Positions 1 to 51,300 of a stretch of DNA of 64,000 bases are shown here, piece after piece; position 1 is the first letter of the stretch; every line of letters begins with the position of its first letter. The stretch is from the NCBI GenBank assembly GCA_002269645.1, contig NIVC01000238.1:1-64000 (forward strand), in the 5' to 3' direction. This DNA is from Macrostomum lignano (Eukaryota). Below the pieces are notes generated by a model that was given only the letters and a program-made list of their open reading frames with translations, did no database searches and had not been told where the DNA came from. Both the position numbers and the translations under genes were made by a program.

Positions 1-936
1 TCGAGGTCGCAGGTGATGGCCTCTTCAGGAAGCTGATGCAAGGATTGCCAGAAGAAGCTGGTGAGTCGAAGATTCTGTTATCACTAGTGACTCTGAATGT
101 TAAATTAATTCGAGGTTCCTTAACTTTGAGGTCCTTTGTGATTGAGTGTTGCAAGAACCGTTGCGTAGCCCACTCATTATCGTGATGCTACCACTGGCAA
201 GCCTCTGCGAGTAGACTATATTCTGGCTCTGGCCCTTAGTCCTAAGCTGGAAGTCTCGCTGAGCTCCCAGCGACACCGACACAATGGTCGGGTCGTGGCC
301 TAACTCTGGTTCGTTGTCAGAGTGGCCATGGATGGCTACCGATCCATCTTTATAAAAGTTGATCAGGCACGAATTACCTAGTGGCAATCTAAGCTCGACG
401 TGAAGCCAAATGGCTAAGTGAGTGACGACTGGGTGCCAAGCGTCGTTGCACTCAATCTTAGTACCCCCGTAGGTGTACTCAAGCCCATACCAAACTATTT
501 TCCTGGCCTCAGGCTTGCCCTTGGTTAGATGGTGGATGAGTTTGGATAAATGTCTTCCATTAAAATATTTATTTAGCTTGGCTTCAGAAGATTTGAGCGC
601 ATTTGGCAGATATCTAATTTTGCAGTTAGTTAAAGGCTGGCCAGTTTTGTCATCTGTGAGGTCTGGTTCTGGTAGACTGAGTATCAATATTTTAGTTGCT
701 TTTCCTAAGTCTGCTAGTTTACTACTCTTGACAGGCTGGCTCTCACCATCGCTGGCCACATGAAGTTCTTCAGTCACTGTCTGCTGTTGCACACAAGTCG
801 GCGCATTGCTGGAGGACGCAGAACAGGACCTCTGGTCTGGACCGAAGGAGGACCGGTTGTTGGCCTTCTTGGTGCTGACTGGCGGCGAGTCAGTGTCTCT
901 AGAGGCACATCTTTTGCTATTGACTTCTACTTCCAT
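1..936 (-). pseudogene. LINE ORF1 (copy D), N-terminal AlkB/2OG-Fe(II) dioxygenase domain, 1-nt frameshift near 170
   Basis: NSCLINFYKDGSVAIHGHSDNEPELGHDPTIVSVSLGAQRDF and LASGSITIMSG; the shifted frame continues TQRFLQHSITKDLKVKEPRINLTFR (HxD...H...RxNLTFR). Confidence 0.85.
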
Positions 937-1911: not shown

Positions 1912-4302
1912 TTAGGCATTAAGTTTTTTCCTGAGCGCAGCTGTGACCGGGACTCGAAAGCCGGGTCTCAACCATTCTTTGGTGTCATCTTTGAATTTGT
2001 GAATACCACTAACGCTTTTTGAACCATTTTTCCCTAGGCTAAGTAGGCGATATTTGATCATGGGCATGTTGGTGACCAAGTGGATGTAAGAGTTTTTTAT
2101 GTAAGGCGGAGCATCAAGGGAGATGCGCAGAGCCTTGTTTTAGAGTACCTGAATTCTGTTGACTTGGAAGTCGGAAGATTAAGAAGGATGGAGCACCGTA
2201 AGTGATGGTACTTTCAATGAAAGACCTGTAGATCAGTCCTAGTCCGTGCTGGGAGATTCTTTTTGCCATTCTGGCTAACGCAGCAACCTTATTTGTGGTA
2301 GAACCAACGACCTTGTTAATATGAGATTTGTAGTTGAGTTGTTTGTCTAGGACCATTCCAAGAAAGGTGACAGTGTCATAATAACTAATTATGTTGTTCC
2401 CGAGTTTGATCAGGGGTTCACCCGGGCCTGTTTTGTTGCCATTTGCCTTAAAGAAGGAGATTGCTTTACTTTTAGAGGGATTAATAGTAATGCCAACGGC
2501 ATCAAGCCACCTTTTGAGTCGGATAAAGTAGTCATTGAGTATTTTAGCAGACATGCTAAGGTTTTTTCATAAAGCTTGCCTAAACAAGAGGTAAGGCTGA
2601 TAGGCCTATAGCTATCAATGAGGTTTTTAGGTTTATTTGGTTTGGGTATCATTTTGACAGTAGCCATTTTCCATCGCTTGGGAAGTATCCAAGGAGGAAG
2701 CTAGCATTAAAGATCTTTGCAAGGACTCTGATGGAGTCTGGACTCAGGCCAAATTTGAGGACAATGTTCGGAATCTTGTCAGGCCCGGGAGCCCCTCCTG
2801 CCCTGAGCTTCCTACTCTCCCAAAGAACATCCTGATCTATGATGTTGAGAATATCAGCTTCAATGTCTTTTTTGTCTGGATTATCAGGATCGGCATGGTC
2901 TTTATGATAGGTTAACGCAGCTAAGATGTTATGGGGTTTGTAGATCTCATGATCTTTTTGGGCCTCAATTCTCTTATAGAGCTGGGAGGATCTGTCTGGA
3001 CAGGGACGCATCTGAGCCTCAAGGAACTCCTTGAAGGCCTGTGCTTTCTCAGCTTCAGTTTCAGCAACAGAATCCTTGAGAACGATTGGGGGGTACGAGA
3101 TCGGTTTAGGACCTTCCCCCGTCATTTTTTTATATCAATCCAAAAAATTTTGGTTCATTTCGGTAGCTGGTTTTGGAAATTTTTTTGCATAACTTTTCAA
3201 ACTTCCTATATCTATGCATACGGATGGCGAGCCTGATCTCCTTAGCGGCTTGATTCGCCTGAATCATAAAATGGTCAATCCGGGTGTTTCTAAAGAGTTT
3301 TCTAAGTTTCCTCCTGTGTTTAATTTTTGCTATTATGTCTGGGGGGAGTTGTCCGCGGGGATCTCTGTTTGGGATCACCTCCTCAATCGTGTCGTGCAAG
3401 CCCTGGGTTAGCAGGTCTACAGCCCTATCTAATTCAGCTGGAGTGGCCAACCTGAGATAGTTGATTAGTTTATCACTGAGTTTGTCCTGGAGAACAGCCC
3501 TGAAGGTTTCCCAATCAGTGCTCCAGAAGCTTTTAGGGGGGGGTTCGAAATTTTACAGTTTGGGTCAAGGTAAACTTTTATGATGATGGGAAAGTGTCAC
3601 TATCCATGTCATCACCTATGGGAACCTCACTAGTGTGAGGACCAAGATTGGGGGAGCAAAGCCCCAAGTCCAGCTCATTAGCGGTGTGGGAGCCGCCACG
3701 ATTACACACTCTGCTGAATTCACCATAGTTATTTAATAAAATAGGGGGTTGGGGTGGTTTTCAAGCCAGTCAAAGAGCTGTCTGCCGGGGTAATTGTAAT
3801 TTGTGTCTCCACCTAGGGCAGAGTGGTTACAGTTGAAGTCCCCTATAACCAAAGTGGAGGAATTTGTGAAAAGATTTTTTAGAATGTCGCAGTTTAGCTT
3901 GGTAGGGTTAGGCGCCCTGTAGAAGAGGACTATATTAAGTTTGTTTAGCCTATTATGCTTTAAGAAAACCTCAAAGCTAATAAACTCATGGTTACTGTTA
4001 TCAAAATACTTTTTGACATTCATAATGTTTAGATTATTTTTGTAAGCAACTGCGAGGCCTCTTCTACAGTGAGGTTTATCAAATCTAAGGATGGCGTAGT
4101 CTTGGACAAAGAAAGGGTTTGTGTCAACTAAGCCAGTTTCAGAGAAAAGTCCTATGTCTAAGTCCTCATTTTTTAGCCACGAGATTATCTCATAGATTTT
4201 GTTGCTGAGCCCGTTGCAGTTCAGGTGTCCAATAATGAGGGAGTCCCGCACAACAGAGTGACTTTTAGTCTTAGTCGTAGAAGTATTACGAGGAGAGTTG
4301 AA
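1912..4302 (-). pseudogene. LINE ORF2 (copy C): APE endonuclease + RT with several frameshifts and an internal deletion of the RT core
   Basis: GHLNCNGL, LFSET, IGDFNCNH, YRPISLTSCLGKLYEK joined directly to MSAKILNDYF at ~2550, so QGGVLSP and FADD are missing (~460 bp by comparison with copy A). C-terminus PGFRVPVTAALRKKLNA*. Confidence 0.9.
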
Positions 4303-6390
4303 TTAATAGAGCAGAGCTAAGCAGACTATAGAAAGAGAGTTCAGGTTTCACCTCCGTTCGCTTGCACGACTTTGGTGTCCCCTGACTCAGCAACAGGCCC
4401 TCTTTGACACCTGAACACCCTAACGACTTCAGACACCACCCGGAAGACGATTGCCCCGCCTCCCAGGATGTGAACATCCGTCCTTGTTCAATGTTCATGA
4501 GTCGGTCGAGCGCCTGTAACACTACATCGAGCACATCTTCCCGAGAGAAAAAGCCCCTCTCACTTGGTCCTATTTGGTTAGTTGATTCAACTCCTGGATG
4601 CATCATGACCGGATTGGCTGGAGCAGTTGTTGGCGGCTCAAATGTGTTGATTGCATCAGACAGAGCATTCTGGTTGGCTGAGGCGACTGAGGCGGCGGCG
4701 GCAGCATTGGCAGATGAGGCGGGGAATGATGCTCGTTGGGCTTCGGCAGCTTTGGCAGCTCGGTTAGAGAAGGCTATTGGCCGAGAACCGGCTGCGGACG
4801 CATGGCATCTGCGTAGGAGATTGGCCCAGGGACGCCGAAGGTTTCCCCAAGGGTCTGGCTGTTTTCTGGCTTATGGGCTCTCAGCTGTTGTTGTTGCTTT
4901 CGGATTCGGTCATGTTCTTTGCGGTTGCCAATTCGTTAGCCTCTCGGACTTTAGAGCATTTGAATGAGAATGCCGGATGGTTTTCGCCGCAATTTGCACA
5001 CTTGAAGACTTGGTCTTTGGGGCAATCCATTGAGAAATGATTGCCAGCGCATTTGTTGCACCTATAGTTTGCTGTGCAGCGCGCCTCATGGTGACCGAGT
5101 CCTGAGCACCGCTTGCACTGGATAGCTCTGACGGGCGGGAGACTATTAGATTCTTCGCATCTATATTTCACAAATCCTAGGTAGATACCCTGTTGGATGC
5201 AGCTATCTACTACTCTTTGGCACTTGGTGAATAGCCTTACGAAGGGAGTCGGCTGGCCAGTCTGTTTGGAGATAATTCTAACTGCTCCATCTATTGAGAG
5301 TTGCTGGTCAGAGTCATTTAGGTGCTTGGCTAGACCGCTTACGTCGACCGCTAGCGGAACGTTACGGACAATGAAGGAGAGAACGTTCGGAGATTTGAGG
5401 GGGGCTCGAACCCTCGGCTGGTCATTAGCTTGGTGGACAGGTCTCTTAGCAGCAGTGCGCCTGGTGACTTCAAAGTCATTAATTGAGCTGATTTTCATTG
5501 GAGCTGTTAAGAGCGTATTGAAGTCCCTGGGATGCTCAGGGTGGACAATGTAGCCAGGTGAGTGGCACAGATCTTTAACTGATTTGATTCTTACGTTACG
5601 GAAATTAGTCTTTAGCAGCCACTCAAACTATATTGGATCATTTCCTTCCAGGGCGACTTCGAAGATGACTGGTGCAGATTTGGTCTGCCTGGACTGGCTA
5701 TTGTTGGCGCTGGATTTAATGCTGGATTGGCTAGCCCTTCTGATTTTCTCTAGGTTGACTCGCTCTTCTTCAGCTTTTCTACGAATAGAGTCTTGGTCAT
5801 CAAGGTCGCAAGAGATGACTGGCTGATCATCAGTGGGAGTGATGAGATCCTGCGACTGGCGAACGCAAGGGTTCAACGAGGGCGCTGGAGACTCGGAGAC
5901 CAGATTTTCAGAAGTCATTCGAAAGGTGAGATTAACGCGAATGTCTTTTACTTTAGGGTCTTTGTAGATGCTGTGCTCAAAATATTTCTGAGTGGCACCA
6001 CTCATTACCAACAAACTGCCAGACTCGAGAGGTTGCTTAAAAACAATGTTTTTGGACTGCTTGGATCTAATCTAATGGCTAATTCTCTTGTAGCTCCCAG
6101 CGAAATAGAGGCTATTGTCGGATTGGGGCCAAGTTCGGTCTCGTCATCAGCGTGCCAGGGGATGTTAACATGCCCCGATTCGTAAAAATTTACTAGGCCG
6201 GAGTTGAACAGTGGTAGCCCAAGTTCGACGTGGAGCCAGGTAACTAGCTTGGTTAACTCCGGGTACCAGGCCTCATTGGCTTCCAGACTACCACCGGAAT
6301 AGGTGTATGCCGGGCCGTACCAGACAATTTTTCTTTTTTTCTGGTCTACCATTAGTTAGATGGTGAAAGGCTTGCGGGAGGACATCTTTG
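4286..6390 (-). pseudogene. LINE ORF1 (copy C): AlkB domain + gag-like domain with 3 CCHC zinc knuckles, frameshifted
   Basis: FNSGLVNFYESGHVNIPWHADDETELGPNPTIASISLGATR; FEHSIYKDPKVKDIRVNLTFR; CKRCSGLGHHEARC, CNKCAGNHFSMDC, CANCGENHPAFSFKC. Confidence 0.9.
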
Positions 6391-6680
6391 ATGATCAAGC
6401 AGTCAAGCAGTCAAGCATCTTTGAAAGCGTTAAGTCTGGCGCTAAAAGCCGCTGTCTCGCACGAGCCGACGGCGCCGCCACCGAGCCAAGCCACCGAGCC
6501 GCCGCCGCCACCAAGAAGTAGGACCAGTACGCAGTGCGTAGCCGCTGACGCCGGTGCAGATAAAGACCGATGTAGGACCTGCACGTAGTGCGATGCTGCA
6601 GTAGAGCCGGAGAGCACCAGGAGATGTAGAGCAGGCAATGTAGAGCAGGCGGTGTTAAGCAAGCAAGTTGAGCAGGTACG

Positions 6681-6697: not shown

Positions 6698-9600
6698 ATT
6701 CATTCATTCATTGTTGAGTATTCGGGCTTAAATAGGCCCGGCGCTTCAGCCTTTTCGGCTTTACGCACAATGTATTTGTAGGTTATCGAGTTTTTATTGA
6801 CATTCGATTTCAATATTTTGTTAAAAAGTGCATAAAATAAAACAAATAAAACAGTGTATCAGATAATATATAAAGTAGCAATCGAAGCAATAAAACAAAT
6901 CTGACTAAGGTGAATCGAAGATGAAGAGAACGAAGGCATTAGAACAAATCGAAAAAGGAAATTGTGAGGAGATGTAAAAACAAATTAAAACAGTAGAGAT
7001 GATTAAAACATGTACAGTTCAAAGTCGGGAGAGAGACAGAAGATGAAGCAGAGCACAAAGAGGCGAGGGGTATAGGCAAAGTTGCGTCAGTGTTATTGTA
7101 TATTGAATATTTGGCATATTGGCATTAAATATTTGGAATATGGCATAAAATGAAATAATTGTTAGTTGTACAATAAAATTGTATACATGTATTGTCATGA
7201 ATATTTTCTGGTGTAAAAAATTTTTATCACAGATTTATTTGAGATTTCATTTTTTTTTACAATTACATCAAGAGTTTGTTAGGTTTTATTCAATAATTGC
7301 TCTTGTTTGACAATACTGCTCACAGTTGAACCTAAGCACAGCATGGGTGCCACATTAGACATTTCTCAGACGGGCCACTGCAGGCATCCTGAACCCTCTC
7401 CTATCCCATTTCTTGGTGTCTAGGTCGAAGTTGTGTACTCCAGACATCTCGGTGTTTCTGTACCAGCGCTTGGCTAGATTCCAAATGCGCTCTTTGATCA
7501 TCGGCATTTTGGTGATGTAGTGTAAGTAACTAATTTTAGTGCACAGTGGAGCGTCTAGTGACGTTCTCAGCGCTTTGTTCTGTAGCAGCTGCAACTTGTT
7601 GAGTTGAGCATCCTTGAGGTGTATCAAGACTGGAGCGCCATAAATTATGCAGCTCTCAATATACATCCTATAAATCAGTCTAAGCCCCTGCTGGGAGATT
7701 TTGGTATTACTAGCAAGGCGCTGCAGCGCAAGGAGCTTGTTCTGCGCAGAATTAATTACCTTGATGAGATGAGGTTTATAGGTGAGCTGTTTATCAAGGA
7801 TAATTCCTAGAAAACGCACAGAGTCATAGTAAGGAATGGACTGATTGCCAAGCAGCAAGGGGGGCCTATCAGGTCCTGTCCGGTGATTGCCCAAGGGCTT
7901 GAAAAAAGAAATTGCTTTGCTCTTATTTGGGTTGATAATTATCCCAACCTCGTCTAACCAGATTTTGAGCTTCTTGAAGTAGGCATTTAGCAGCTTAGCA
8001 GAAAGTGATGAAGTTCTGGCGCTGGCCCAAACGGCCAGGTCATCTGCGTACTGACTAATGCGAACCTTTCTGTCAGCAGGAAGCGGAATTTTGTTGACAT
8101 AAACCAGGAAGAGGAGCGGCGAGAGGACACCTCCCTGGGGAACACCTGCCGCCGGGTTGAGGCTCTCACTCAGCCCCCCCCCCCCAACCTGGACCAGCAC
8201 TTCTCTGTCGTCAAGGTAGCTAGAAATGGACCTCATGAGGCTGTGAGGAAGATCACTGTCGAGAAGATCAAGGCGTAGCGAGTCATGCCAAACGCCGTCA
8301 AAGGCGCCCTTAACATCAAAAAAGACACCAAGGGTGTATTGCCCAAGCTGCAGCATTTTTAGAACGTCATCTGTGATCCTGACTATGTTGTCAAAGGTGC
8401 AGTGATCTTGGCGATATGCACATTGATCGGAACTAATAATGTTACGGTTTTCAAGAATGGTTCGAAAGTTTCTAGCGAGTATTTTTCATATAATTTTCCT
8501 AAGCAGGAAGTTAGGCAGATGGGGCGGTAGCTGTCAATTTGACCTTTGGGTTTGTCGGGTTTGGGAATCATCTTTATGATTCCCTTTTTCCAGGCTTTGG
8601 AAAGTACCCAAGCAGGGAGCAAGTATTGAACAGCTTAGTAAGCACCCTGATGGAGTTGGGGCTCAGGCCCTTCTTGAGGACGACATTGGGGATCTTATCG
8701 GGGCCTGGGGCTCCCCCGAGCCGAAGACTGCTTATAGCCATTGTAACATCTATGTTTATGATCTCAAGAAGGTCAGCCTCAGACACTTCTTGATTGTTGC
8801 CCTCAACAGCCTGGTTTTCTCTAAAGTAGGACAGAGCCTGAAAGATCCCCTCATGGGGCTTGAAGATTTCTCGCGATCGAGCATTGATGACTTTGTTATA
8901 GTACTCAGTCCAGGCTTAGGCTTGGGTTGCATTTGGTAGTCAAGAAAATATCTGAAAAGGTTCGCTTTTTCAGCCTCTGTTTCTGCAGTGGCGTCATTAT
9001 GCTTCAGTGTAGGGTAGATTATCCTTTTCTTGGCTTCGCCAGTCATCTTTTTCACGTCTTCCCAGAAGCGACGTGGTTCGTGACGATAACTATTTTTGGC
9101 TATCTTCATACTTTTTGTATCTGTGATTCTTGATAGCTACTCTGATATCTTTGGCCGCCTGATTGGCAAGAATCCTGAACGTATCGTCCCTAGTCTTCTT
9201 GAAGCATTTTCTAAGATGCCTCCTGTGCTTAATTTTTCTAACTATGTCCGGTGGGAGTTGCTCTCTAGGGTCTCTGTCAGGGACCACCTCATTGATGGTG
9301 TCAGTGATAGCCGAAGACAGATTGTCCACGACTTGGTCGATCTCTTCAGGGGTAGAGATATCAGATTTTAGAATTCTGATGTTGTCAAGCTTGTCCTGTA
9401 GCGAGAATCTGAAGGACTCCCAATCAGTCTTCCCGAAGCTTTTGAGCGGGAGCTTTGCCTTGTGGCAAGCGGGATCAATGGACAGAGATACAACTATGGG
9501 AAGATGGTCACTGTCTAGATCTTCACCCACGGAGACCTCACTGGAGAAGGGAGCAAGCCTGCTAGTGCACATAGCTAGGTCAATCACATTGCCTAGGTTT

Positions 9601-11003
9601 TTACCAGAGCGGTTATAGATCCGCGTGTAATCCCCGAACTTGTTGAGAACGACAGGGGGATCCGCATGCGAATCGAGCCAATCAAAAAGCTGCCTCCCAG
9701 GGTAATTTTGAGCACTATCACCACCAAGAAACCCATGCCTGCAGTTGAGATCTCCTAACAGAAGGGAGTATGGGGAGGATAGACACTGCTCAAGCAGATC
9801 CGTCTTAAGACAGTCGGGGAGCCCGGGGGCCCTATAGAACAGCGTGATATCAAACTTCCTGAAAGAGTTGCCAGGGAGATGCACTGAAAACTTGATATAC
9901 TCATGAGTTTGACTATCAAAATACTTTTTAACCCCGTCAATAATAAGATGACTCTTGTAAGCAATGGCAAGCCCGCGCCTGCAGTCTGGAACGTCTAGTC
10001 TCAGGATGGCGTATCCCTGTATGAAGAAATTATTGTCCTTGGTCAGACACGTCTCGGAAAAAAGGCCTATATCAATGTTTTCGTCTCGAACCCACCATAT
10101 AACCTCATGCAGCTTATTTGAAATCGTGTTACAGTTTAAATGCCCCACTTTCAGCGTAGTAGAGCAGTTGTTTACCCTCGAACCATTCTTGGTAACTGAG
10201 CTGTGACTGTTACTGTTACACACTGACATGCGCGCTCTTAAGTTTCAGGTAACAAGTAGTTCGGGGCCTGAAGGTGAACAGCTTACCATGCAGCTGCCCC
10301 ACCATCAGCTCCCTGACCCTGTAGCTCCGAGAGTGAGCCCAGGACCTCAATGACAACGTGGACTGCGAGTTCCCCCGCAGTCTGTGCGTCGCAGAGAAGC
10401 CCCGAGCCCATCTCCAGGATGCTACTCAAGGCCCTCATGGCCAGCCTGAGAATATCTGTTTGTGAGTAAATTTTTGAGCTACTGTTTTTGGTATGGTTAT
10501 AATTGGTGGCCGCATGATTTGGTTTGGCCCAACTCGCCTTCGGTCCGTAGGTCACCGGCTCGGTCTGGTTAACAGTCGATGCTGACCCCGCGCCTGAGGC
10601 CACCGCTGCAGGGGCTGTCGCCTGAGCCACTGCAGGGGCCAGGTACCGGGACGACCTCCGCGGAGGCCATCGCCTGGACCGCCGCGGGGTGGGATGCAGG
10701 CTCGGTTGCCGGGTCAACCGCTGCAGAGGCCATCGCCGAGACCGCCGCAGGGGGACCAGCCGGGCACGCGTTGTACATTGGAGGCAGTTGGCTTGTCACA
10801 GCTGATCGGCTTGCTGCTGCAGAGTAGGAGAACTGTTGCGGCCTCGGAAAGGCTTCTGGTAAGTTTTGCTGATAGCAGTCGTAGTCGTACTGTTGTCGTA
10901 GACTGTGCACCCTCTCGCGCTCCCTTTCAGTTGCCAGGCGATGTGCCCTAATAGCTACTGGGCATTTGTGAGAATACGACGTGTGCTCACCACTGCAGTT
11001 GGC
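6698..11003 (-). mobile_element. Non-LTR retrotransposon copy B (5'-truncated within ORF1), with (GAAT)n 3' tail
   Basis: Begins at the third zinc knuckle (ANCSGEHTSYSHKC at ~11003); ORF1 C-terminus 10283..10910; ORF2 7355..10229; 3' UTR; tail AATGAATGAATGAAT at 6698-6712. Confidence 0.9.
7355..10229 (-). pseudogene. LINE ORF2 (copy B): APE + RT, several frameshifts; no RNase H or C-terminal zinc finger seen
   Basis: GHLNCNTI, LFSETCL, LGDLNC, DSDHLPI, YRPICLTSCLGKLYEK, FFDVKGAFDGVWH, GVPQGGVLSPLLF, ISQYADDLAVW, LQLLQNKALR. Confidence 0.93.
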
Positions 11004-13642
11004 TTAAGGGAAGCCAGTAGATTGATGAGCACCGGAGCGCCGTAAGTCATTGTGCTTTCAATGTAAGATCTATAGATTAGGCGAAGAGCCAGTTGCGAAA
11101 TCCTGGAGTTCTTAGCTATCCTAGCTAGGGCAGCCATTTTGGCTGTCGAAGACCCAGCTACCTTGTCGATATGGGCCCTAAAGTTAAACTGTTTGTCAAG
11201 AACCATCCCTAGGAAGGTGACGGAATCATAGTACTTGATTTTGTCTTGTCCAAGCTTAATTGGAGGATCGTCTATACCTGTCTTGTTCCCATTAGCTTTG
11301 AAAAAGGAAATGGCTTTGCTTTTGGAGGGATTGATGACAATGCCCAAATTGTCAAGCCACTTTTTGAGGACAATAAAGTAGGAGTTAAGCCTTTTAGCGG
11401 ACATGGTAGATTTTCTGGCAGAGGCCCATACTGCTAAGTCGTCAGCGAACTGACTAAAGCGGACTTTGCTATCAGTGGGCTTAGGAATAGAGCTGGCGAA
11501 GATGATGAAGAGCAGGGGCGAGAGCACCCCACCCTGCGGGACACCCGCCGTCGGCTGAAAGACCCCGCCCCGGGCTCCGCCAACCACCAGCTCCACAGAT
11601 CTGTCATCCAGATAATTTGCTATAATGCGTGTCATGTTGTGCGGGATTTTACTTTTCCAGATTTTATATTTAAGGTAGTCCAGCCAGACTCCATCAAAGG
11701 CTCCTTTGATGATAAGAAGACCCCCAACGTGTACTGCCTCAACTGAAGCATTTTCAGCACATCGTCGGTGAGTCTTACTATATTGTCATATGTGCAGTGG
11801 TCGAATCTGTAGGCACATTGTTCCTCATTAATAATTCCTAGGTTTTCTAAGATAATCTTAAGGTTTCTAGCTAGAATCTTCTCATAAAGTTTGCCAACAC
11901 AGGAGGTTAGGCTGATGGGTCTATAGCTTTCCACGAGATTTTTGGATTTGTTTGGTTTAGGGATCATCTTAATGATGGCCTTTTTCCATTGTTTAGGGAA
12001 GTATCCTATGAGAAAACTAGAGTTGTAAATTTTTGCGAGCGCTCTGATGGAGTCTGGGCCGAGACAATATTTAAAACCATGTTAGGAATTCTATCCGGAC
12101 CGGGAGCTCCTCCTGACCTAAGTTTTCTGCTTTCCCAGAGCACGTCCTGGTCAGTAATGTTAAGGATATCGTTTTCGATATCTTCTTTATCTGGATTATC
12201 TGGGTTCGCGTGCTCTTTATGGTATGAAAGTGCCGCAATTATATTGTTATGGGTTTTGAAGATCTCATGATCTTTGTACTTACTGACATTTTCATAGATT
12301 AGCGAGTCGTGGTTGGGGTGAGATTGCATTTGATCTTTAAGAAAGTCGCTGAAGAATGAAGCTTTTTCTGCCTCAGTCTCGGCATGCGAATCTTTGTAGA
12401 CTAGAAGGGGATAGTTGATCATTTTGGACCTTTCTCCTGTCATCTTTTTGATGTCAATCCAAAATTTTTTGGGTTCCTTTTTGTAACTAGTTTTAGCAAT
12501 TTTGTGGCATAGATCCTCGAATTTCCTATATCTATGCATACGTATAGCATTTCGAATTTCTTTAGCTGCTTGATTGGCTTGAACCCTGAAGTCGTCTATT
12601 CTAGTTTTTTTGAATAATTTTCTAAGTTTCCTCCTATGCTTAATTTTGTTAATAATATCTGGGGGAAGCTGTTCCCTAGGGTCCCGGTTGGGTACAACAT
12701 CCTCAATGGTGTCATGAATGCACTGATTTAGCAGATCAACCGCTTTGTCTAGGTCCTCAGGTGTGGATAATCTGCGACTGAGAAGCTGTTGGTTGCTAAG
12801 TTTATCCTGAAGGGTCCCTCTAAAGGTTTCCCAGTCAGTGTTCCAAAAGCTTTTAGTGGGTTTTTTGCTCAGCTTACAGTTAGGATTTAAATAAATTTTA
12901 ATGATAATGGGGAGGTGGTCGCTATCTAGATCTTCTCCCACAATAACGTTGCTGGTATGTTTAATTAGCTCCGGGGAACAAATTCCTAGATCAAGCACGT
13001 TCCTAAGGACTAAGCCACTACGGTAGCTGACTCTGGTACAGTCCCCATAATCGTTAAGAATGGTTGGTGGGTTTGGATGCGAGTCAAGCCTATCAAACAG
13101 CTGCTTGCCAGGATAGTTAGTTTGGGAGTCACCACCGAGGGCTGGGTGGTTGCAGTTAAAGTCCCCGACAACTAAGGTCGAGGGATTAGAGAATAAATGA
13201 TCAAGAAGTTGGGTGTTAAGCCGTGTTGGAGTCGGGTTCCTGTAGAAGAGGACCACGTTAAATTGCTTAAGTTTGTTATTTTTAAGATGAACTTCAAAAC
13301 TGATAAGCTCGTGGTTGCAGTTGTCAAAATTTTTTTTTCAACATTCATAATTTCTAAATGATTTTTATAGACAACTGCAAGTCCTCTTCTACAGTTAGGG
13401 ACGTCAAACCGGAGCGTGGCGTACCCTGGTAAGTGAAATTTGTTTTTTTCTTCTAGGCATGTTTCAGAGAAAAGCCCAATGTCTAAGTCTTCTTTGTTGA
13501 TCCAGGATATTATCTCATAGAATTTGTTGCTAAGCCCGTTGCAGTTGAGATGTCCAATGTTCAGAGTGTCCCGCACAACAGACTGTTTACCCGGCCCATT
13601 ATTATCAGGGGAATTATTAGATGAGTTGAAATTTGATATCAA
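11004..13642 (-). pseudogene. LINE ORF2 (copy A): APE + RT, frameshifted, 3'-truncated
   Basis: LNIGHLNCNGL, VVGDFNCNH, DLDSDHLPI, YRPISLTSCVGKLYEK, GVPQGGVLSPLLF, FSQFADDLAVW. One frameshift sits in the T-run at ~13329-13338. Confidence 0.92.
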
Positions 13643-13673: not shown

Positions 13674-16442
13674 TCAGGTTTCATCTCCGCCCGCTTGCGC
13701 GGCTTCGGTGTCCCCTGTCCCTGAATCAGGTCCCCTTCGATTCCTGAGTGCTGCCAGGACTTCAGTCACTGCCTGGATCGCGAGTTGCCCCGCTTCCCAT
13801 TCAGTGAGCATCTGCCCCGGATTAGTGCCCATGAGCCGAGTGAGTGCCTGAAGTACAACCTCGAGCACCCCCATCCGGGAGATTAGGCCCCTCTCACTTG
13901 ATTTGCGCGTGTCATTGGCGTTTTCAACTCCTAGATTGGGCGCGGCCACGGAGTCGGAGGCAACTGCCGGCAGCGTGGGCGGGTTGGCGGAGATTTGGAT
14001 TGCCGCCGGATTGGTCAGAGCAGTTCGATTCGCCGGCGCTTCGGCTGGTGGGGCATCGCTAGCGGCAGAGGCAGCGGCGGCGGCGGCAGCGGCGGCGGCA
14101 CGGTTGGAATACGCGATAGGACCCAGGATTGGCTTGATGAGTCCAGTTCGCATTGGTCGCATTGCGTCAGCGTAGGATAGCGGTCCTGGTACCCCAAAAG
14201 CCTCCCCTAGGGACCGACTACCAAAGATGTTCTGATTTTGTTTTTGTTTTGCTTCTTCTCTTTGTGCTCTGATTTTTTCGTGTGCTTTTCTAGTTGCAAT
14301 TTCGTTTGCTTCCTTGATTTTTTGACATTTAAATGAAAACTGCGGGTGCTCGCCCCCGCAGTTGGCGCATTCGAACTTGCGGTCCTTGGGGCAGTCGGCT
14401 GAGAAGTGCTCCCCTGCGCATTTGTTACATCTGTATACTGACGCAGTGCATTTATTCTCATGGTGCCCTAATCTTTGGCACTTCATGCACTGGATGGCTT
14501 TGACAGGTGGAAGATTAATCGACTCCTCGCACCTGAACCTGCTGAAGCCTAGATGGACGCCGTGCTCAATGCATCTCTCCATTGCGCCCTTACTCTTCGT
14601 GAAGAGGCGAACATGCGGTGATGGTTCACCTGTTGCCTTATAGATGATGCGCACGGCGCCATCAATCGGAATTTGCTGCTCTGACTCTACCAGGTGTTTG
14701 GCTAACTCTTTAGCGTCCACCGCAATGGGGACGTGCTTGACAATGAAACAGTACACCTGAGGAGATTTAAGAGGTGCACGCACCTGATCGTCCCCTTGTT
14801 TTACTGGCCTCTTGGCTGCCATGCGTCTTGTAATTTCAAATTCATTAATTTTGTTGGTTTTAAGTGGTGCTGTTAGTAATTTATTGTAATCCTTAGGATG
14901 TTCTCGAGTTACAATGTAGCCTGAGCTATGGTACAGATCTTTGACCGATTTAATTCTAATTTCAGGAAAGTTGTTTTTTAGAAACCATTCAAATTTTATG
15001 GGATCCTTGCCTTCATGCTCAATTTCGAAGATGACTGGAGCTGAGTTTTTAGGTTTTGAATTGTCATTAGTTCTTAGTTGATAGTTGCTGCTTGCAGTGT
15101 TAGGTTGGCTGGTTAGATTAGAGCTAAGTTGGCTAGTTTGGCTTTGAGTTTTAGGTTGATTTAGCTGATTATTTTGGCTAGTTTGGCTAGGTTGGCTATT
15201 GCAGGTTGTTTTAGTTTCAGTTTGTTGTTGCTGTTGTGTTGTTGTCGGCGGCGTCAAGTGGATGAGCGTTTGCTGTGAGTTGTCAGATGGCGGCTGCTGC
15301 GGCTGCATTTGCATGCTGGCTTGTTGCTGCAAGTTGTGCTTGCTAATGGTTGATTGCTGTTCGTGAGCAATTTGCATGTTGTTTTGTTGAGATATTTGAG
15401 TGGTTGGCTGCTGACTGCTAGGTTTGCGCCCCGTGCTACTGTTTGAACGCGATCTAATTCGTCTTAAATTTTCCGCTTCCAGCTCTGCCCGTCGGCGAAC
15501 CGAGTCTTCATCATCAAGATCGCAAGTGATGCTGTTGTCGACTGGTTGGATACAAGGATTTGCCTGGTCAGAGACAGGAAGTTCTTCCGGGATCCTAGCA
15601 TCGTGCGTAAGTCTAAACGTGAGGTTGACTCTGAGCTCTTTGACTTTGGGGTCTTTGAGGACCGCGTGTTGAAGGTGCGATTGTGTTGCACCGCTCATTA
15701 CCAGCAGCGAGCCACTGGCGAGTCTTTGAGACCATGCGATGTTAGTTGAGCCTTTGGGGCGCATGTGGAAGTCGCGCGTTGCGCCAATCGAGATGGATGC
15801 GATAGTCGGGTTAGGCCCTAACTCTACCTCGTCATCAGAGTGCCAGGGGATGTTGATCGATCCGTCTTTGTAGAAATTGATCAAACATGAGTTGAAGACG
15901 GGAAGCTGGTACTCGACTCTGAGCCAGGTGGCTAGGCTAGTGACAAGGGGATGCCAGTTGTCATTGGCACTAATTTTAGTACCACCATAGGTGTACTCTG
16001 GTCCAAACCAAACGATTTTCCGGGCTTCCGGTCTACCGTTGGTGTGGTGGTGAAAGGCTTTCGCCTGAATCTCGTCAACGAGAATTTTCAAAATTTGATT
16101 GTCGCAATTTTTTAGAGCCGATGGATGGTAACTAATGTTGCAATTATTTGGTAGATTGTATGATTTGCTGTCTGATTTGTCTGGTTTTGGTAGTCTAATA
16201 ATTGTTGTTACACCTTCAGCTTTCATGACTTCTAGACTACCCCTTTTAGAAGGAGGCAGCTCACCTTTTGAGGTACCAGGTGGAGTTTCTGGCAGTGGCG
16301 CGTTTGACGGAGACAGCATGGTTCGTTGTTCGGATCTGCGGACAGGGCCGGCAGAGTCTCGGTTGTTCACCTTCTTGGTCGACACCGTCGGCGGCGAGTC
16401 AGTGTCTCGTGAGCACCGTTTGCTATTAATTTCGATTTCCAT
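13674..16442 (-). CDS. LINE ORF1p (922 aa): AlkB (ALKBH2/3-like) dioxygenase + Q/S/T-rich linker + gag-like nucleic-acid-binding domain with 3 CCHC knuckles
   Basis: Uninterrupted ORF. WFGPEYTYGG, FNSCLINFYKDGSINIPWHSDDEVELGPNPTIASISIGATRDF, LASGSLLVMSGATQSHLQHAVLK, RVNLTFR; CMKCQRLGHHENKC, CNKCAGEHFSADC, CANCGGEHPQFSFKC. Confidence 0.93.
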   Translation of the reverse strand: MEIEINSKRCSRDTDSPPTVSTKKVNNRDSAGPVRRSEQRTMLSPSNAPLPETPPGTSKGELPPSKRGSLEVMKAEGVTTIIRLPKPDKSDSKSYNLPNNCNISYHPSALKNCDNQILKILVDEIQAKAFHHHTNGRPEARKIVWFGPEYTYGGTKISANDNWHPLVTSLATWLRVEYQLPVFNSCLINFYKDGSINIPWHSDDEVELGPNPTIASISIGATRDFHMRPKGSTNIAWSQRLASGSLLVMSGATQSHLQHAVLKDPKVKELRVNLTFRLTHDARIPEELPVSDQANPCIQPVDNSITCDLDDEDSVRRRAELEAENLRRIRSRSNSSTGRKPSSQQPTTQISQQNNMQIAHEQQSTISKHNLQQQASMQMQPQQPPSDNSQQTLIHLTPPTTTQQQQQTETKTTCNSQPSQTSQNNQLNQPKTQSQTSQLSSNLTSQPNTASSNYQLRTNDNSKPKNSAPVIFEIEHEGKDPIKFEWFLKNNFPEIRIKSVKDLYHSSGYIVTREHPKDYNKLLTAPLKTNKINEFEITRRMAAKRPVKQGDDQVRAPLKSPQVYCFIVKHVPIAVDAKELAKHLVESEQQIPIDGAVRIIYKATGEPSPHVRLFTKSKGAMERCIEHGVHLGFSRFRCEESINLPPVKAIQCMKCQRLGHHENKCTASVYRCNKCAGEHFSADCPKDRKFECANCGGEHPQFSFKCQKIKEANEIATRKAHEKIRAQREEAKQKQNQNIFGSRSLGEAFGVPGPLSYADAMRPMRTGLIKPILGPIAYSNRAAAAAAAAAASAASDAPPAEAPANRTALTNPAAIQISANPPTLPAVASDSVAAPNLGVENANDTRKSSERGLISRMGVLEVVLQALTRLMGTNPGQMLTEWEAGQLAIQAVTEVLAALRNRRGPDSGTGDTEAAQAGGDET

Positions 16443-16994
16443 AGGCCTTTAAAACAGTGGCCAAGATACAAGAAAAGTCCTTAAAACAAATTAAAACTTA
16501 AAACTTAAAACTGTATAAATAAAATTAAAACTTAAATAATACTACTTTAAGTAGACCTAGGTCGGCTAAATACAAGAGAATGTCCTTATTCTATTACGCT
16601 ACTGAAAAACCTAAACAGCAGCTTCCTGGCGCCTCGTTGCAGAAGTCGTGCGCCGCCGGCCGGCCGGTTGCAGACCGCTGGGCGAAGCCTGGCGCCGCCT
16701 GAAGCCGCAGCTGAGCCGCCGAGCCGCCGCCGCCGCCGAGCCGCCGAGCCGCCTGACCGAGCCGTCGAGCCGAGCCGCCAAAAGTCGCCGAGAGTCGCCG
16801 AGAGCCGAGAGCCGCCGAGAAGTGCCTGCTCGAAGAGCGATGCTGCAGCAGAAGCCGGTGCCGGACGCCAGGTAGGTGGCCACCCCAGATGCCAACTCGC
16901 AGTGAAGCAAGAGATACCCGAAGGCCCACACTGTGGATACCTGTAGTATCTCAATACTTTAAAGCTTGTTGGTTACCAAGGCAACCAGCAACCA

Positions 16995-17845: not shown

Positions 17846-18741
17846 CTAATTCAATTGCCAGGCCAAAACTTTGGGCCAGTTTTGATGCCCCAAAACTCCA
17901 CTCAGACCGGCACTGCTGGTAATCTTCACCTTCTTCCGCCCGTGCTTTTGACGTCTGGATTGCATGATGGGACTGTCTTTGTCGGCAAAATTACCAACGA
18001 ATCGAAGTTCTTTGAACCGGCGAATAACCTTCGTACGCCAAAAGCTTGAGCTCCCATCCTGAGACCGGTCTTTTAAGCCACGATACGAGGTGATGATTGC
18101 CGTACAGATGTCCGTTAATTGGCTCGATGATAGGTACGGATTAGTTGGTGACAAATACTTCGAGGTGACGTCGTCGACAATAAACTTTAGGAACTTATTA
18201 ACAAATGCTGAGTTCAGCTTGAAATCCACACCCTTATCAGGGTGCATTCGAAGTTCGCAAAGAGCATCGCTAAGGAAATCCATACGAGGAAGCGAGTACA
18301 CCGCAGGCCACGCCATCAAAGTATCGGCTGGGGTTTGCTGGACTCGATTGGGTGTCACTAATACTGTCAGATCAGATGCTGCAGCTATGTTCACTGCATC
18401 CGGTGTCCGATCCACTTTAGACACAGTGGACGGTTCAGGCAGCAATTGACTAGGTGGCACTGGGACCAGTTCACCTTGAAGGAGAAAAAAAATTTCCCTC
18501 CTTCTTTAGCTACCTCCGCTATAATTTCGTCATCGTCGATTTCGAACCCGTCGGCTGTAACGATGCGCACGTTTTCAGCATCTTCTATGCCTAATTTAGT
18601 GCAGCCCTTAGTTCTTAATTCGGCGAGGGAGAGCCCAGATGCTGGTAACAGCTTCTTACTCTCCTCGTTGAAGTTGCAGATTCGAAGCTGAAATGAGAGT
18701 AGATTGAAACAACTCCAATCAGAATAGATCTGGTAAGACAT
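17846..18741 (-). pseudogene. Unknown protein with a CIDE-N/ubiquitin-like N-terminal domain, probably a DNA-transposon accessory ORF; frameshift in a T-run at ~18485-18493
   Basis: RIVTADGFEIDDDEII...LLQGE resembles CIDE-N; the downstream helical block ICTAIITSYRGLKD...FWRTKVIRRFKELR recalls TE-associated SAMD3-like proteins. Recognised by eye only. Confidence 0.45.
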
Positions 18742-21533: not shown

Positions 21534-22293
21534 ATGAATAGCCATTATCCTCTTATAATGCTGCTCTGTGTACCTCTTATTGTTAGAACAGCGACAACTC
21601 GAGTCATGTTCACCACTGCCAAAATGCGGAGCAACTTGGCTCCGGTTGCCATGGAGACTCTGACTATCATCGGCAGGCTGAAATGCGCCGAGCTGTGCAC
21701 TCTGAGATCTGACTGCTATGGCTTCAGCAGGCTGATGCAGGGTCTGTGCAGATTTTTCAACTTCAATGCTTTCCACAATGACGCCTGGATGAGCTCGGAT
21801 GTCTGCGATGTTTACACCGCCAGGAATGGTGAGTTTAAGAGCACGGTGCACATACATGTATGTCGCTATATATGCATGCAGTTGTGCTATACTTTGCATT
21901 CTAGATGCAGTGAAGCTGAGCTTCATCAGCTGCAACCAGAGCTCAGTCCAGATGGATGGAGTTTGCGAGAGAGCATTCGATGGCGATACGAACCAAGACT
22001 ACTATTATCGATCCTGCACCCACACGGCTGACGGTCAGCTGGGCTGGTGGGAGGCTCAGCTGTCCCGACCCGCCTTCGTCTCGCATGTCACAATCTACAA
22101 CCGTCAGGACTGCTGCAGCTACCGACTGAAAAAGCTGTCCCTGCAGGTCGACGGCTCTGAGTGCTACCGACTGAACACAGAGAAATTTTCCGTGGCCACC
22201 TTCCAGTGCAACGCCTTCGGCACCAAATTCGGAATATTCAGTTTGCTGGACAATTCAATCAACATCTGTGAAGCGGAGATCTTTGGATTTTGA
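21534..22293 (+). CDS. Secreted PAN/apple-like + F-type lectin (fucolectin) domain protein, 2 exons (21534-21828, 21905-22293)
   Basis: Hydrophobic N-terminus; CAELC...DCYGF...C PAN-like pattern; a GT-AG intron keeps the frame; canonical fucose-binding motif H-X26-R-X-D-X4-R (HT...RQDCCSYR) and ICEAEIFG end. Confidence 0.85.
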
Positions 22294-31751: not shown

Positions 31752-44149
<12,398 letters not shown>

Positions 44150-48305: not shown

Positions 48306-51300
48306 TCAATAATCGCTACCCTCCTCCCAATCGCTCGCCTCCCGATCGCTTGCCTCCCGATCGCTCGCCTCTCGATCGCTCGCCTCTCGATCGCTCGCCT
48401 CATGATCGCTCGCCTCATGATCGCTCGCCTCCCGATCGCTCGCCTCATGATCGCTCGCCTCTCGATCGCTCGCCTCCCGATCGCTCGCCACCCGATCGCT
48501 TGTCTCCTGATCACTTGCCTCACGACCGCTTGCCTCTTCCTGAACCTCCCCAGCAGCCCGCCTTTTCATTCTCTTGAGGACTTCACCAATGCAGCTACGC
48601 GGTTTATTGTTACCCAACTGTCGGCGGTAAACTTTAGATCCAACAAGAATATCTGAAAAGTTTTTTACATAAAGCCCAAATGTGAATCCTTAGTCCAGAA
48701 AGCTGCATTCAAATAGATTATTTCAAACTGGAATACTTACGAACAATGCTCTCGGCGACTGCAGGTGGCAATCTTTGCTTGCCCTTTCGGCCTTCCATAC
48801 TGAAGTGCTGAAGCACTGTCGGGGTGGCCGTACAGAGCAGCATCGTTGTAATTGCGTCGGTCAGCTTCGGGTGGGTCTCCGTCCGCAGAGCTAACTGCTG
48901 GAGCTGTTATAAGTACGAATCAATAAATTAAGTACAAGTTTCACAGATTTGAGGCCAGCATTTTAAAACTTACGAAGGCTGCCTTCACAGTAGGAACCTC
49001 ATCCACCTGCTTGACAAATTGCTTCAGTGCATCGAGAGAGCGCACTGGAAGATCTTGGAGGCTTGTCGGTGGCGCAACGCTTCTGCCTGAGCTTTTAATC
49101 GCCTCTTCCAAAGCGAGCTGACGCTCAATAATCATTTTCATCCACTCTGCAGTTTGTGTACATCAACGTATGTAAACACAAGGAGATTTTTTAAGCCATG
49201 AGTGAACTTCTTATAGCAGACTTACTTTCTAAATTCTTGCAGTGACAAGAAAAAGCAGGTGGAACTGGTTCGTGCTCGGCAGCGTCAGTTTCGCAGCCCC
49301 CGCTCGCGCCAGCCGAGTGCCGCACAGGTGTCTGATGCCGCCCCGATTTATCAGTGCAGTCCCGGCTTGTGCCAGACGAGTGCCGCACAGGTGTCTGATG
49401 CCGCCCCGATTTATCAGTGCAGTCCCGGCTTGTGCCAGACGAGTGCCGCACAGGTGTCTGATGCCGCCCCGATTTATCAGTGCAGTCCCGGCTTGTGCCA
49501 GACGAGTGCCGCACAGGTGTCTGATGCCGCCCCGATTTATCAGTGCAGTCCCGGCTTGTGCCAGACGAGTGCCGCACAGGTGTCTGATGCCGCCCCGATT
49601 TATCAGTGCAGTCCCGGCTTGTGCCAGACGAGTGCCGCACAGGTGTCTGATGCCGCCCCGATTTATCAGTGCAGTCCCGGCTTGTGCCAGACGAGTGCCG
49701 CACAGGTGTCTGATGCCGCCCCGATTTATCAGTGCAGTCCCGGCTTGTGCCAGACGAGTGCCGCACAGGTGTCTGATGCCGCCCCGATTTATCAGTGCAG
49801 TCCCGGCTTGTGCCAGACGATTGCCGCACAGGTGTCTGATGCCGCCCCGATTTATCAGTGCAGTCCCGGCTTGTGCCAGACGAGTGCCGCACAGGTGTCT
49901 GATGCCGCCCCGATTTATCAGTGCAGTCCCGGCTTGTGCCAGACGAGTGCCGCACAGGTGTCTGATGCCGCCCCGATTTATCAGTGCAGTCCCGGCTTGT
50001 GCCAGACGAGTGCCGCACAGGTGTCTGATGCCGCCCCGATTTATCAGTGCAGTCCCGGCTTGTGCCAGACGAGTGCCGCACAGGTGTCTGATGCCGCCCC
50101 GATTTATCAGTGCAGTCCCGGCTTGTGCCAGACGATTGCCGCACAGGTGTCTGATGCCGCCCCGATTTATCAGTGCAGTCCCGGCTTGTGCCAGACGAGT
50201 GCCGCACAGGTGTCTGATGCCGCCCCGATTTATCAGTGCAGTCCCGGCTTGTGCCAGACGAGTGCCGCACAGGTGTCTGATGCCGCCCCGATTTATCAGT
50301 GCAGTCCCGGCTTGTGCCAGACGAGTGCCGCACAGGTGTCTGATGCCGCCCCGATTTATCAGTGCAGTCCCGGCTTGTGCCAGACGAGTGCCGCACAGGT
50401 GTCTGATGCCGCCCCGATTTATCAGTGCAGTCCCGGCTTGTGCCAGACGAGTGCCGCACAGGTGTCTGATGCCGCCCCGATTTATCAGTGCAGTCCCGGC
50501 TTGTGCCAGACGAGTGCCGCACAGGTGTCTGATGCCGCCCCGATTTATCAGTGCAGTCCCGGCTTGTGCCAGACGAGTGCCGCACAGGTGTCTGATGCCG
50601 CCCCGATTTATCAGTGCAGTCCCGGCTTGTGCCAGACGAGTGCCGCACAGGTGTCTGATGCCGCCCCGATTTATCAGTGCAGTCCCGGCTTGTGCCAGAC
50701 GAGTGCCGCACAGGTGTCTGATGCCGCCCCGATTTATCAGTGCAGTCCCGGCTTGTGCCAGACGATTGCCGCACAGGTGTCTGATGCCGCCCCGATTTAT
50801 CAGTGCAGTCCCGGCTTGTGCCAGACGAGTGCCGCACAGGTGTCTGATGCCGCCCCGATTTATCAGTGCAGTCCCGGCTTGTGCCAGACGAGTGCCGCAC
50901 AGGTGTCTGATGCCGCCCCGATTTATCAGTGCAGTCCCGGCTTGTGCCAGACGATTGCCGCACAGGTGTCTGATGCCGCCCCGATTTATCAGTGCAGTCC
51001 CGGCTTGTGCCAGACGAGTGCCGCACAGGTGTCTGATGCCGCCCCGATTTATCAGTGCAGTCCCGGCTTGTGCCAGACGATTGCCGCACAGGTGTCTGAT
51101 GCCGCCCCGATTTATCAGTGCAGTCCCGGCTTGTGCCAGACGATTGCCGCACAGGTGTCTGATGCCGCCCCGATTTATCAGTGCAGTCCCGGCTTGTGCC
51201 AGACGAGTGCCGCACAGGTGTCTGATGCCGCCCCGATTTATCAGTGCAGTCCCGGCTTGTGCCAGACGAGTGCCGCACAGGTGTCTGATGCCGCCCCGAT

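Follow-up and report, generated by a model that had tools for sequence, protein, structure and literature searches.

An ALKBH3-like AlkB domain fused to the ORF1 protein of LINE retrotransposons in the flatworm Macrostomum lignano

In long interspersed nuclear elements (LINEs), ORF1 proteins are generally viewed as RNA chaperones and packaging proteins, and one locus of the flatworm Macrostomum lignano raises the question of why such a protein should contain what looks like a nucleic-acid demethylase. The locus lies in a 64,000-nucleotide stretch (contig NIVC01000238.1, positions 1 to 64,000 of the forward strand; GenBank assembly GCA_002269645.1), which was analysed as a whole and is called the window below. 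At 13674-16442 it holds the first open reading frame (ORF1) of a LINE, a 922-amino-acid (aa) frame that a sequence-only reading of the window had described as a LINE ORF1 protein (ORF1p) fused to a catalytically intact AlkB domain. Is the domain a genuine and intact AlkB, is the fusion a property of a LINE family, and what might it do for the element?

Architecture of the focal ORF1

The 922-aa reading frame is real and is encoded on the minus strand (16442..13674), within a LINE copy here called copy D. Its features are as follows.

13674..16442, minus strand: ORF1 of the focal LINE copy D, uninterrupted from ATG to stop (stop included), 922 aa
16443..17000, minus strand: presumed 5′ untranslated region (UTR) of copy D, G+C-rich at ~16620-16950, upstream limit uncertain
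16161..16442, minus strand: N-terminal Ser/Pro/Lys/Arg-rich region (aa 1-94), poorly conserved and disordered
15588..16160, minus strand: AlkB (ALKBH3-like) Fe(II)/2-oxoglutarate (2OG) dioxygenase domain (aa 95-285), from the Pfam match and structure
15612-16025, minus strand: Pfam PF13532 match (aa 140-277), within the AlkB domain
15828..15845, minus strand: WHSDDE (aa 200-205) with iron ligands H201 and D203, plus D204, from alignment
15660..15674, minus strand: LQHAV (aa 257-261) with the distal iron ligand H259, from alignment; Leu replaces the usual preceding Trp
15612..15632, minus strand: RVNLTFR (aa 271-277), 2OG-binding (R271, N273, T275, R277), from alignment
15048..15455, minus strand: Gln/Ser/Thr-rich low-complexity linker (aa 330-465), 54% Q+S+T
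14826..15035, minus strand: RNA-recognition-motif (RRM)-like domain 1 (aa ~470-539), from the model and Foldseek
14523..14753, minus strand: RRM-like domain 2 (aa ~564-640), from the model and Foldseek
14325..14489, minus strand: three CCHC zinc knuckles (aa 652-706), from spacing motifs
13677..14321, minus strand: C-terminal tail containing a helix, a stretch rich in Ala and a semi-conserved end segment, from the model and alignment

Profile, sequence and structure comparisons gave the same assignment for the AlkB domain. The Pfam family 2OG-FeII_Oxy_2 (PF13532) matched aa 140-277 with an E-value of 1.1e-27 and 97.9 bits (curated cut-off 31.2), and a phmmer search against all PDB chains returned human ALKBH3 (E 1.9e-26), ALKBH2 (1.4e-18) and ALKBH5 (0.02), with nothing else scoring better. 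For aa 85-300, an AlphaFold2 model based on 73 homologues had a mean predicted local distance difference test (pLDDT) score of 89 and a predicted template modelling (pTM) score of 0.88. When the model was compared with the PDB by Foldseek, the best 25 matches were all ALKBH3 or ALKBH2 (E 1e-18 to 5e-14; template modelling (TM) score 0.69-0.81). The modelled fold was closest to human ALKBH3 on single-stranded DNA (ssDNA) containing 3-methylcytosine (3mC or m3C), followed by ALKBH2, at a TM of ~0.8; E. coli AlkB, ALKBH5 and ALKBH6 ranked far behind. An ALKBH5-type catalytic domain was not recognized either by sequence (E 0.02 against 1.9e-26 for ALKBH3) or by modelled fold (TM ~0.6 against 0.8).

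The active site is preserved as well. WHSDDE, QH and RVNLTFR of the ORF1 pair residue for residue with WHSDDE, QHRV and RVNLTFR of human ALKBH3, and the positions of H201, D203, H259, R271, N273, T275 and R277 were invariant or nearly so across 256 aligned AlkB domains. The focal copy and nearly every other retroelement copy retain these ligands of iron and 2OG; the exceptions are P0127 and P0157, with Ser at the N273 position, and P0128, a partial sequence without the distal part. The Asp following HxD (D204) is retained in most copies; we take it to be the residue that contacts the exocyclic amine of the substrate, 1-methyladenine (m1A) or m3C, in AlkB, ALKBH2 and ALKBH3. The domain is therefore an AlkB of the ALKBH2/3 type, closest to ALKBH3 and then to ALKBH2, with all catalytic residues intact. 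The profile search and structure prediction that the sequence-only reading had proposed thus confirmed its ALKBH2/3 assignment, and the motifs it had picked out, namely HxD (WHSDDE), the distal His (LQHAV) and RxNLTFR, are all present and aligned with ALKBH3. Judged by its residues and modelled fold, the domain is apparently enzymatically competent, that is, a working demethylase.

A different view would be that the AlkB fold is kept solely for nucleic-acid binding or scaffolding, with no catalysis. Catalysis is indeed something that we infer, and the roles of other ORF1p accessory domains are unclear, but every ligand of iron and 2OG persists in subfamilies with only 28-45% identity, and a purely structural role would not need them; we regard this explanation as very improbable.

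Downstream of the AlkB domain, the linker and the three knuckles proposed earlier were both recovered. The knuckles have the spacings CX2CX4HX4C (aa 652-665), CX2CX3HX4C (aa 672-684) and CX2CX3HX6C (aa 692-706). The linker is far shorter in another copy of the window (copy B, below) and is unconserved between subfamilies. A model of aa 455-735 (pLDDT 81) predicted two beta-alpha-beta-beta-alpha-beta units, followed by the knuckles and a long helix, and both units matched tandem-RRM proteins such as Pub1, HuR and HuD (Foldseek, E 2e-7 and below). The core of the ORF1 thus consists of two predicted RRMs directly upstream of three CCHC knuckles, which is the arrangement of a type I ORF1p. Type I ORF1 proteins are defined by one or two RRMs followed by three CCHC knuckles and are the sole ORF1 type of the Jockey lineage (PMC4120745). 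The two RRMs and three CCHC knuckles, together with an apurinic endonuclease (APE) and reverse transcriptase (RT) and no RNase H, fit the Jockey superfamily as described in that survey, an assignment based on architecture.

Recurrence and conservation of the fusion

Pieces of an ORF2 were found downstream of ORF1 on the same strand, comprising APE (Exo_endo_phos_2, Exo_endo_phos) and RT (RVT_1) matches. Copy D is one of four related LINE copies (A-D) that lie head-to-tail on the minus strand in the first 17 kb of the window, and one of them is 5′-truncated.

12513..13567, minus strand: APE endonuclease remnant of copy D ORF2, frameshift near 13335-13340
11018..11967, minus strand: reverse-transcriptase remnant of copy D ORF2, frameshifts near 12008-12084 and 11634
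1..936, minus strand: copy A, a third AlkB-ORF1 LINE, of which the 5′ part is present, with its ATG at 936 and running off the window
1930..6398, minus strand: copy B, a second AlkB-ORF1 LINE, decayed, with AlkB, gag part, APE and RT
5721-6398, minus strand: AlkB of copy B
4344-5702, minus strand: gag part of copy B
3196-4287, minus strand: APE of copy B
1930-2652, minus strand: RT of copy B
7355..11012, minus strand: copy C, a 5′-truncated sister LINE with the ORF1 tail (from ~aa 690), APE and RT, and no AlkB part

The APE-RT ORF2 downstream on the same strand and the multiple diverged copies, one of them 5′-truncated, identify the element as a LINE. The earlier description of an APE-RT LINE therefore stands; what had gone unnoticed is that the focal ORF2 is dead. 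Similarity of copy D to its relatives stops at ~11018, ~85 codons before the end of ORF2, and the three ORF2 frameshifts together with the missing 3′ end make the focal copy a dead element, though its ORF1 is open.

Within the window, copies A and B are 55-65% identical. Copy A, whose AlkB part of ORF1 is 55% identical to copy D, keeps HSD, LQH and RINLTFR and contains one frameshift; copy B keeps WHADDE, EH and RVNLTFR despite a frameshift.

Several observations concern the boundaries of these copies. The start of copy C (~11012) coincides with the end of the copy D ORF2 similarity (~11018), which suggests either an insertion of copy C into the 3′ region of copy D or a deletion or recombination between copies; the missing 3′ end of copy D was not found elsewhere in the window. 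No clear poly(A) or microsatellite tail or target-site duplication was seen at the copy ends inspected. On the minus strand a 19-nucleotide motif, AARGGCTGARGCGCMGGGC, lies upstream of where ORF1 starts in just two copies, A and B (at 1043-1061 and 6736-6754), where it is followed by the TATA-like TATTTAAGCCC or TATATTAGCCCC (0.06 matches expected by chance). The motif, which is absent upstream of copy D, is a candidate for an internal promoter.

To place the window copies in a wider context, the full ORF1 was compared with 1.84 billion representative proteins in an exhaustive HMMER scan. As a result, 11 proteins were found at E ≤1e-30, among them the M. lignano entries P0121, P0001, P0002 and P0127. 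The N-terminus of P0002 corresponds to a translated stretch resembling the presumed 5′ UTR of copy D. When only the RRM-CCHC part served as query, a word-indexed protein search gave one weak match, and it was the HMMER scan that revealed the family; searching the contig index for exact matches to P0001 or to the window ORF1 gave none. Further family members are present among the M. lignano hypothetical proteins (PAA54533.1, PAA61448.1, PAA54534.1, PAA49615.1 and PAA54535.1), and another M. lignano GenBank contig (L008, NIVC01002030.1) carries a further subfamily, 36% identical, with AlkB, gag, APE and RT.

The same layout was found in independent assemblies. Four other proteins from the HMMER scan, P0123-P0126 (757-962 aa, 28-30% identical overall), from runs SRR31628392/394/403/434, follow the order AlkB, variable linker, RRMs, three knuckles and tail, as in the focal ORF1. 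In the 9-kb contig L001 both frames are open, an AlkB-ORF1 of 843 aa and an ORF2 of 948 aa with APE and RVT_1, and the start of an APE is visible downstream in contigs L003 and L005-L007. By blastn, the run-derived contigs had no nucleotide similarity to the M. lignano sequence examined. A 123-124-aa reading frame without a Pfam match lies between ORF1 and ORF2 in the run-derived elements, and in the window copies only ~30 nucleotides separate the two.

L001 4346-4717: inter-ORF frame of 123-124 aa
L002 3167-3538: the same
L006 3269-3643: the same
L007 3177-3551: the same

The AlkB-ORF1 fusion is thus a family trait and not a one-off capture. The sequence-only reading had held that a domain present in a single genomic copy, as a recent host-gene capture, would undo its interpretation; instead, at least three diverged copies occur in the window, and others at further loci and in independent assemblies.

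The locus could, in principle, be an artefact or a one-off, with a LINE inserted into, mis-assembled with or mis-annotated together with a host AlkB gene. Repeats are densely clustered here, and a merged gene model does exist: UniProt A0A1I8GKP7 (P0267, M. lignano), which matches window 16130-15330 at 100% and 10958-10668 at 99% identity, wrongly fuses ORF1 of copy D with the tail of the copy C ORF1. However, three window copies, further loci of M. lignano and assemblies made independently share the same continuous AlkB-linker-RRM-CCHC frame, and the host ALKBH3 is a different, multi-exon gene elsewhere. This recurrence refutes the explanation for practical purposes, and the chance that we still allow it is close to negligible. 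Several M. lignano proteins named "Fe2OG dioxygenase domain-containing" or hypothetical are LINE ORF1 fragments or chimeric models and not host genes; as a consequence for annotation, those UniProt and GenBank entries should not be taken for host repair genes.

The domain has also been conserved in sequence. Between window copies, the AlkB domain showed proportions of nonsynonymous differences (pN) of 0.27-0.30 and of synonymous differences (pS) of 0.76-0.82; synonymous sites are saturated, and no numeric dN/dS is therefore given. Among copy D and P0123-P0126, the AlkB domain had a mean pairwise identity of 43%, compared with 39% for the RRMs, 46% for the knuckles and only 20-27% for the linker and the two tails. 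The AlkB domain is under purifying selection. As it is conserved to the same degree as the RRM and CCHC modules and its ligands are kept, its maintenance as an enzyme appears to go back as far as that of the RNA-binding core.

Proposed function and origin of the domain

We consider it probable, with appreciable room for doubt, that this LINE lineage encodes an ORF1p in which a competent ALKBH3-like AlkB is permanently fused, through a disordered linker, to a type I RNA-binding core, and that it demethylates its own template for reverse transcription. The two roles offered by the sequence-only reading, removal of RT-blocking marks and evasion of host methylation, are both plausible. ORF1 proteins bind the RNA that encodes them and travel with this RNA to the target site. 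Since ORF1p coats its own encoding RNA, the AlkB domain would be held on the element's own ribonucleoprotein. ALKBH3 acts on ssDNA and single-stranded RNA and removes m1A and m3C, which are Watson-Crick-face lesions that stop RTs; in laboratory practice, AlkB pre-treatment of RNA lets RTs read through m1A and m3C.

The proposed sequence of events would start with the flexible linker, which would tether the demethylase to the RNA-coating ORF1p and allow the domain to scan the template. The single-stranded template RNA would then be cleared oxidatively of Watson-Crick-face methylations (1-methyladenine, 3-methylcytosine and similar), with nascent cDNA or the target strand, nicked and displaced, as possible further substrates. 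On the cleared template, target-primed reverse transcription by the ORF2 protein could proceed without stalling or misincorporation. Along this path we infer the activity, the substrate and the benefit to retrotransposition. If it is correct, base methylation of the template would limit target-primed reverse transcription in vivo, and the element would mirror the laboratory use of AlkB on RNA before reverse transcription.

Several points weigh against this proposal. Judged from its sequence, the focal copy is unable to transpose on its own. AlkB-less ORF1 relatives of normal size occur (P0130, P0132 and others), so this ORF1 type can work without it. The proposal also presupposes that m1A and m3C reach relevant levels on flatworm LINE RNA. 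Furthermore, the nucleotide-recognition lid hairpin of the retroelement AlkBs is shorter than that of ALKBH3, and they lack the near-universal Trp before the distal His, so that their substrate preference may differ from that of ALKBH3.

These differences in the lid and before the distal His leave room for a changed substrate, and with it for a regulatory role, in which the domain would erase a host RNA mark (N6-methyladenine (m6A), regulatory m1A or another) used to destabilise, sequester or silence the element RNA. A Gypsy element of orchids carries an m6A demethylase of the AlkB family that has been interpreted likewise (PMC9289625). The flatworm domain is nevertheless far nearer to ALKBH3 and ALKBH2 (E 1.9e-26 and 1.4e-18) than to the m6A eraser ALKBH5 (0.02), and most copies keep D204, the residue presumed above to read the exocyclic amine of m1A and m3C. 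We consider a regulatory role unlikely. Should the host impose such a mark, the domain could reveal a new front in the conflict between host and transposon.

In a DNA-directed role, the domain would repair element DNA, genomic or newly integrated, by acting on 3mC or 1-methyladenine; the 3mC could, for example, be a by-product of host DNA methyltransferases (DNMTs) that target transposons. Both ALKBH3 and ALKBH2 act on DNA, as PDB entries illustrate, and according to a review M. lignano retains DNMT1, DNMT3 and ALKB2, with DNMTs making 3mC off-target (PMC9246332). However, the fusion partner is an RNA-binding ORF1p and not a DNA-targeting module, the host already has an ALKBH3 (P0271) and reportedly ALKB2 too, and the methylation pattern of M. 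lignano is unestablished (PMC9246332). This role seems to us distinctly unlikely. Demethylation of the template RNA by the fused domain thus remains the reading that we prefer.

Where the domain came from was addressed through the host gene and a tree. The host ALKBH3 (P0271/P0134) is a multi-exon gene on another contig with an E of 8e-50 to human ALKBH3, and it has only ~42% identity (E 7e-25) to the full-length element ORF1. P0134, a 263-aa form, falls in the same protein cluster as P0271.

L009 8001-11068: host ALKBH3 orthologue P0271, with a ~290-aa N-terminal extension before the catalytic domain

The retroelement copies all fell into one group beside a clade with metazoan ALKBH3 in a neighbour-joining tree built from 256 AlkB domains; bootstrap support was 22% for this group and close to zero for its placement, and profile scores of the retroelement AlkBs were equal against eukaryotic ALKBH3 and against named bacterial AlkBs. 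The phylogeny suggested by the sequence-only reading brought the retroelement AlkBs together (22% bootstrap) without pointing to a donor. Recent capture of the host gene was rejected, as the host ALKBH3 is a separate gene and the retroelement AlkBs are equidistant from the eukaryotic and bacterial clades; a firm claim of bacterial origin was likewise rejected on the weak bootstrap and the equal profile scores. Shared derived residues support a common origin of the retroelement AlkBs: Pro before the xFNS motif is found in 82% of retroelement copies and in 0/244 others, Phe in NFY in 82% against 7% of others, and Trp before the distal His, present in 212/244 others, has been lost in the retroelements.

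Part of this signature recurs outside LINEs. Protein P0270 (1012 aa, SRR19430222) has an AlkB domain at ~aa 530-665 that shares the Pro and the Phe and has Tyr at the third site, in place of the usual Trp or the LINE-typical Leu.

L004 2120-5158: P0270 AlkB reading frame
L004 5266-7398: 710-aa RT/GIY-YIG reading frame downstream of it

The 710-aa frame, known from one contig, has weak RVT_1 and GIY-YIG matches (below the Pfam threshold) and a YIDD box, and its N-V-I-Y-x-I-x-C-x-x-C...Y-V-G-Q-T pattern is one that we take to be a signature of Penelope-like elements. L004 is thus probably a Penelope-like element with the same AlkB lineage, a lead from a single contig with sub-threshold scores; if so, one AlkB lineage would serve two unrelated retroelement classes. 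A broader and rather doubtful extension is that a single retroelement AlkB lineage has passed between the LINE ORF1p and a Penelope-like element, with RT-blocking template methylation acting as a hitherto unrecognised restriction layer against reverse transcription and AlkB as a counter-defence. The methylations in question would be m1A and m3C, possibly also DNMT-derived 3mC, deposited by hosts or by cell chemistry.

A different AlkB fusion, unrelated to retroelements, is P0148 (811 aa, from metagenome and run assemblies), which combines PRP39-type HAT/TPR repeats with a C-terminal ALKBH3-like domain and belongs to the eukaryotic ALKBH3 clade.

The rest of the window contains likely host exons adjoining the LINE cluster, and micro- and minisatellites dominate its right half; a search of the window against Rfam gave no match.

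18391-18741, minus strand: likely host exon, CIDE-N domain (E 7e-8)
21799-22293, plus strand: likely host exon, F5/8 type C / NedA-like galactose-binding domain (E 7e-12)
33992-64000: micro-/minisatellite-dominated half
36050-37761: (TCTG)n, 1.7 kb
49293-52454: 63-bp unit, 50 copies at 99% identity
59155-62335 and 63488-64000: arrays of 18-23-bp units

Relation to known systems

The sequence-only reading knew of no characterised AlkB borne by a retrotransposon. This does not hold in general, since an orchid Ty3/Gypsy lineage encodes an active ALKBH5-like m6A demethylase (PMC9289625); for LINEs, none was found. With the orchid ALKBH5-like protein and the plant-virus AlkBs already characterised, the general idea is not new. 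What appears new here is the ALKBH3-like type, the fusion into a LINE ORF1p and the animal host. The full-text literature searched, which left most subscription journals and Repbase/Dfam outside its coverage, described neither a LINE nor a Penelope-like element with an AlkB and did not mention these flatworm elements; an earlier mention is possible. A 2014 survey of ORF1 proteins lists RRM, CCHC, coiled coil, CTD, PHD and esterase domains, with AlkB or dioxygenase unmentioned and the esterase as the only enzymatic accessory domain (PMC4120745); a review of retrotransposon accessory domains likewise has no occurrence of AlkB (PMC6338049).

Compared with type I ORF1 proteins of the Jockey superfamily, the flatworm ORF1 shares the two RRMs, the three classically spaced knuckles and an APE-RT ORF2 without RNase H, and differs in adding an N-terminal AlkB domain and a linker. 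Compared with human ALKBH3 and ALKBH2, the domain has the same fold (TM ~0.8), the HxD...H and RxNxTxR residues and an identical Asp after HxD, whereas identity over the structure is ~32%, the lid hairpin is short and the Trp before the distal His is missing. Furthermore, ALKBH3 and ALKBH2 are stand-alone host enzymes, while the flatworm domain sits inside a retrotransposon ORF1p and is not the host orthologue (P0271).

The paALKBH5-like reading frame of Phalaenopsis Ty3/Gypsy (Ogre/Tat) elements is likewise a retrotransposon AlkB demethylase fixed in a lineage and proposed to act on the element's own RNA (PMC9289625). However, it is of the ALKBH5 type (m6A) and forms a separate extra ORF in a 25-kb plant long-terminal-repeat (LTR) element, as a recent acquisition (PMC9289625), whereas the flatworm domain is of the ALKBH3 type, is in frame with the RNA-binding core of ORF1p and occurs in many subfamilies of an animal non-LTR element. 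If the function proposed here is correct, retroelements would have gained an eraser of their own, separately from the plant viruses and the plant LTR elements and through a different AlkB subfamily.

The AlkB domains of plant RNA viruses (mostly Flexiviridae) offer the parallel of a selfish, RNA-templated replicator whose AlkB removes m1A and m3C from RNA: they repair these lesions in viral RNA (PMC2553587) and protect the template (PMC2553587, PMC544882). There the AlkB domain lies inside a replicase polyprotein, whereas in the flatworm elements it is part of the packaging protein of an animal retrotransposon.

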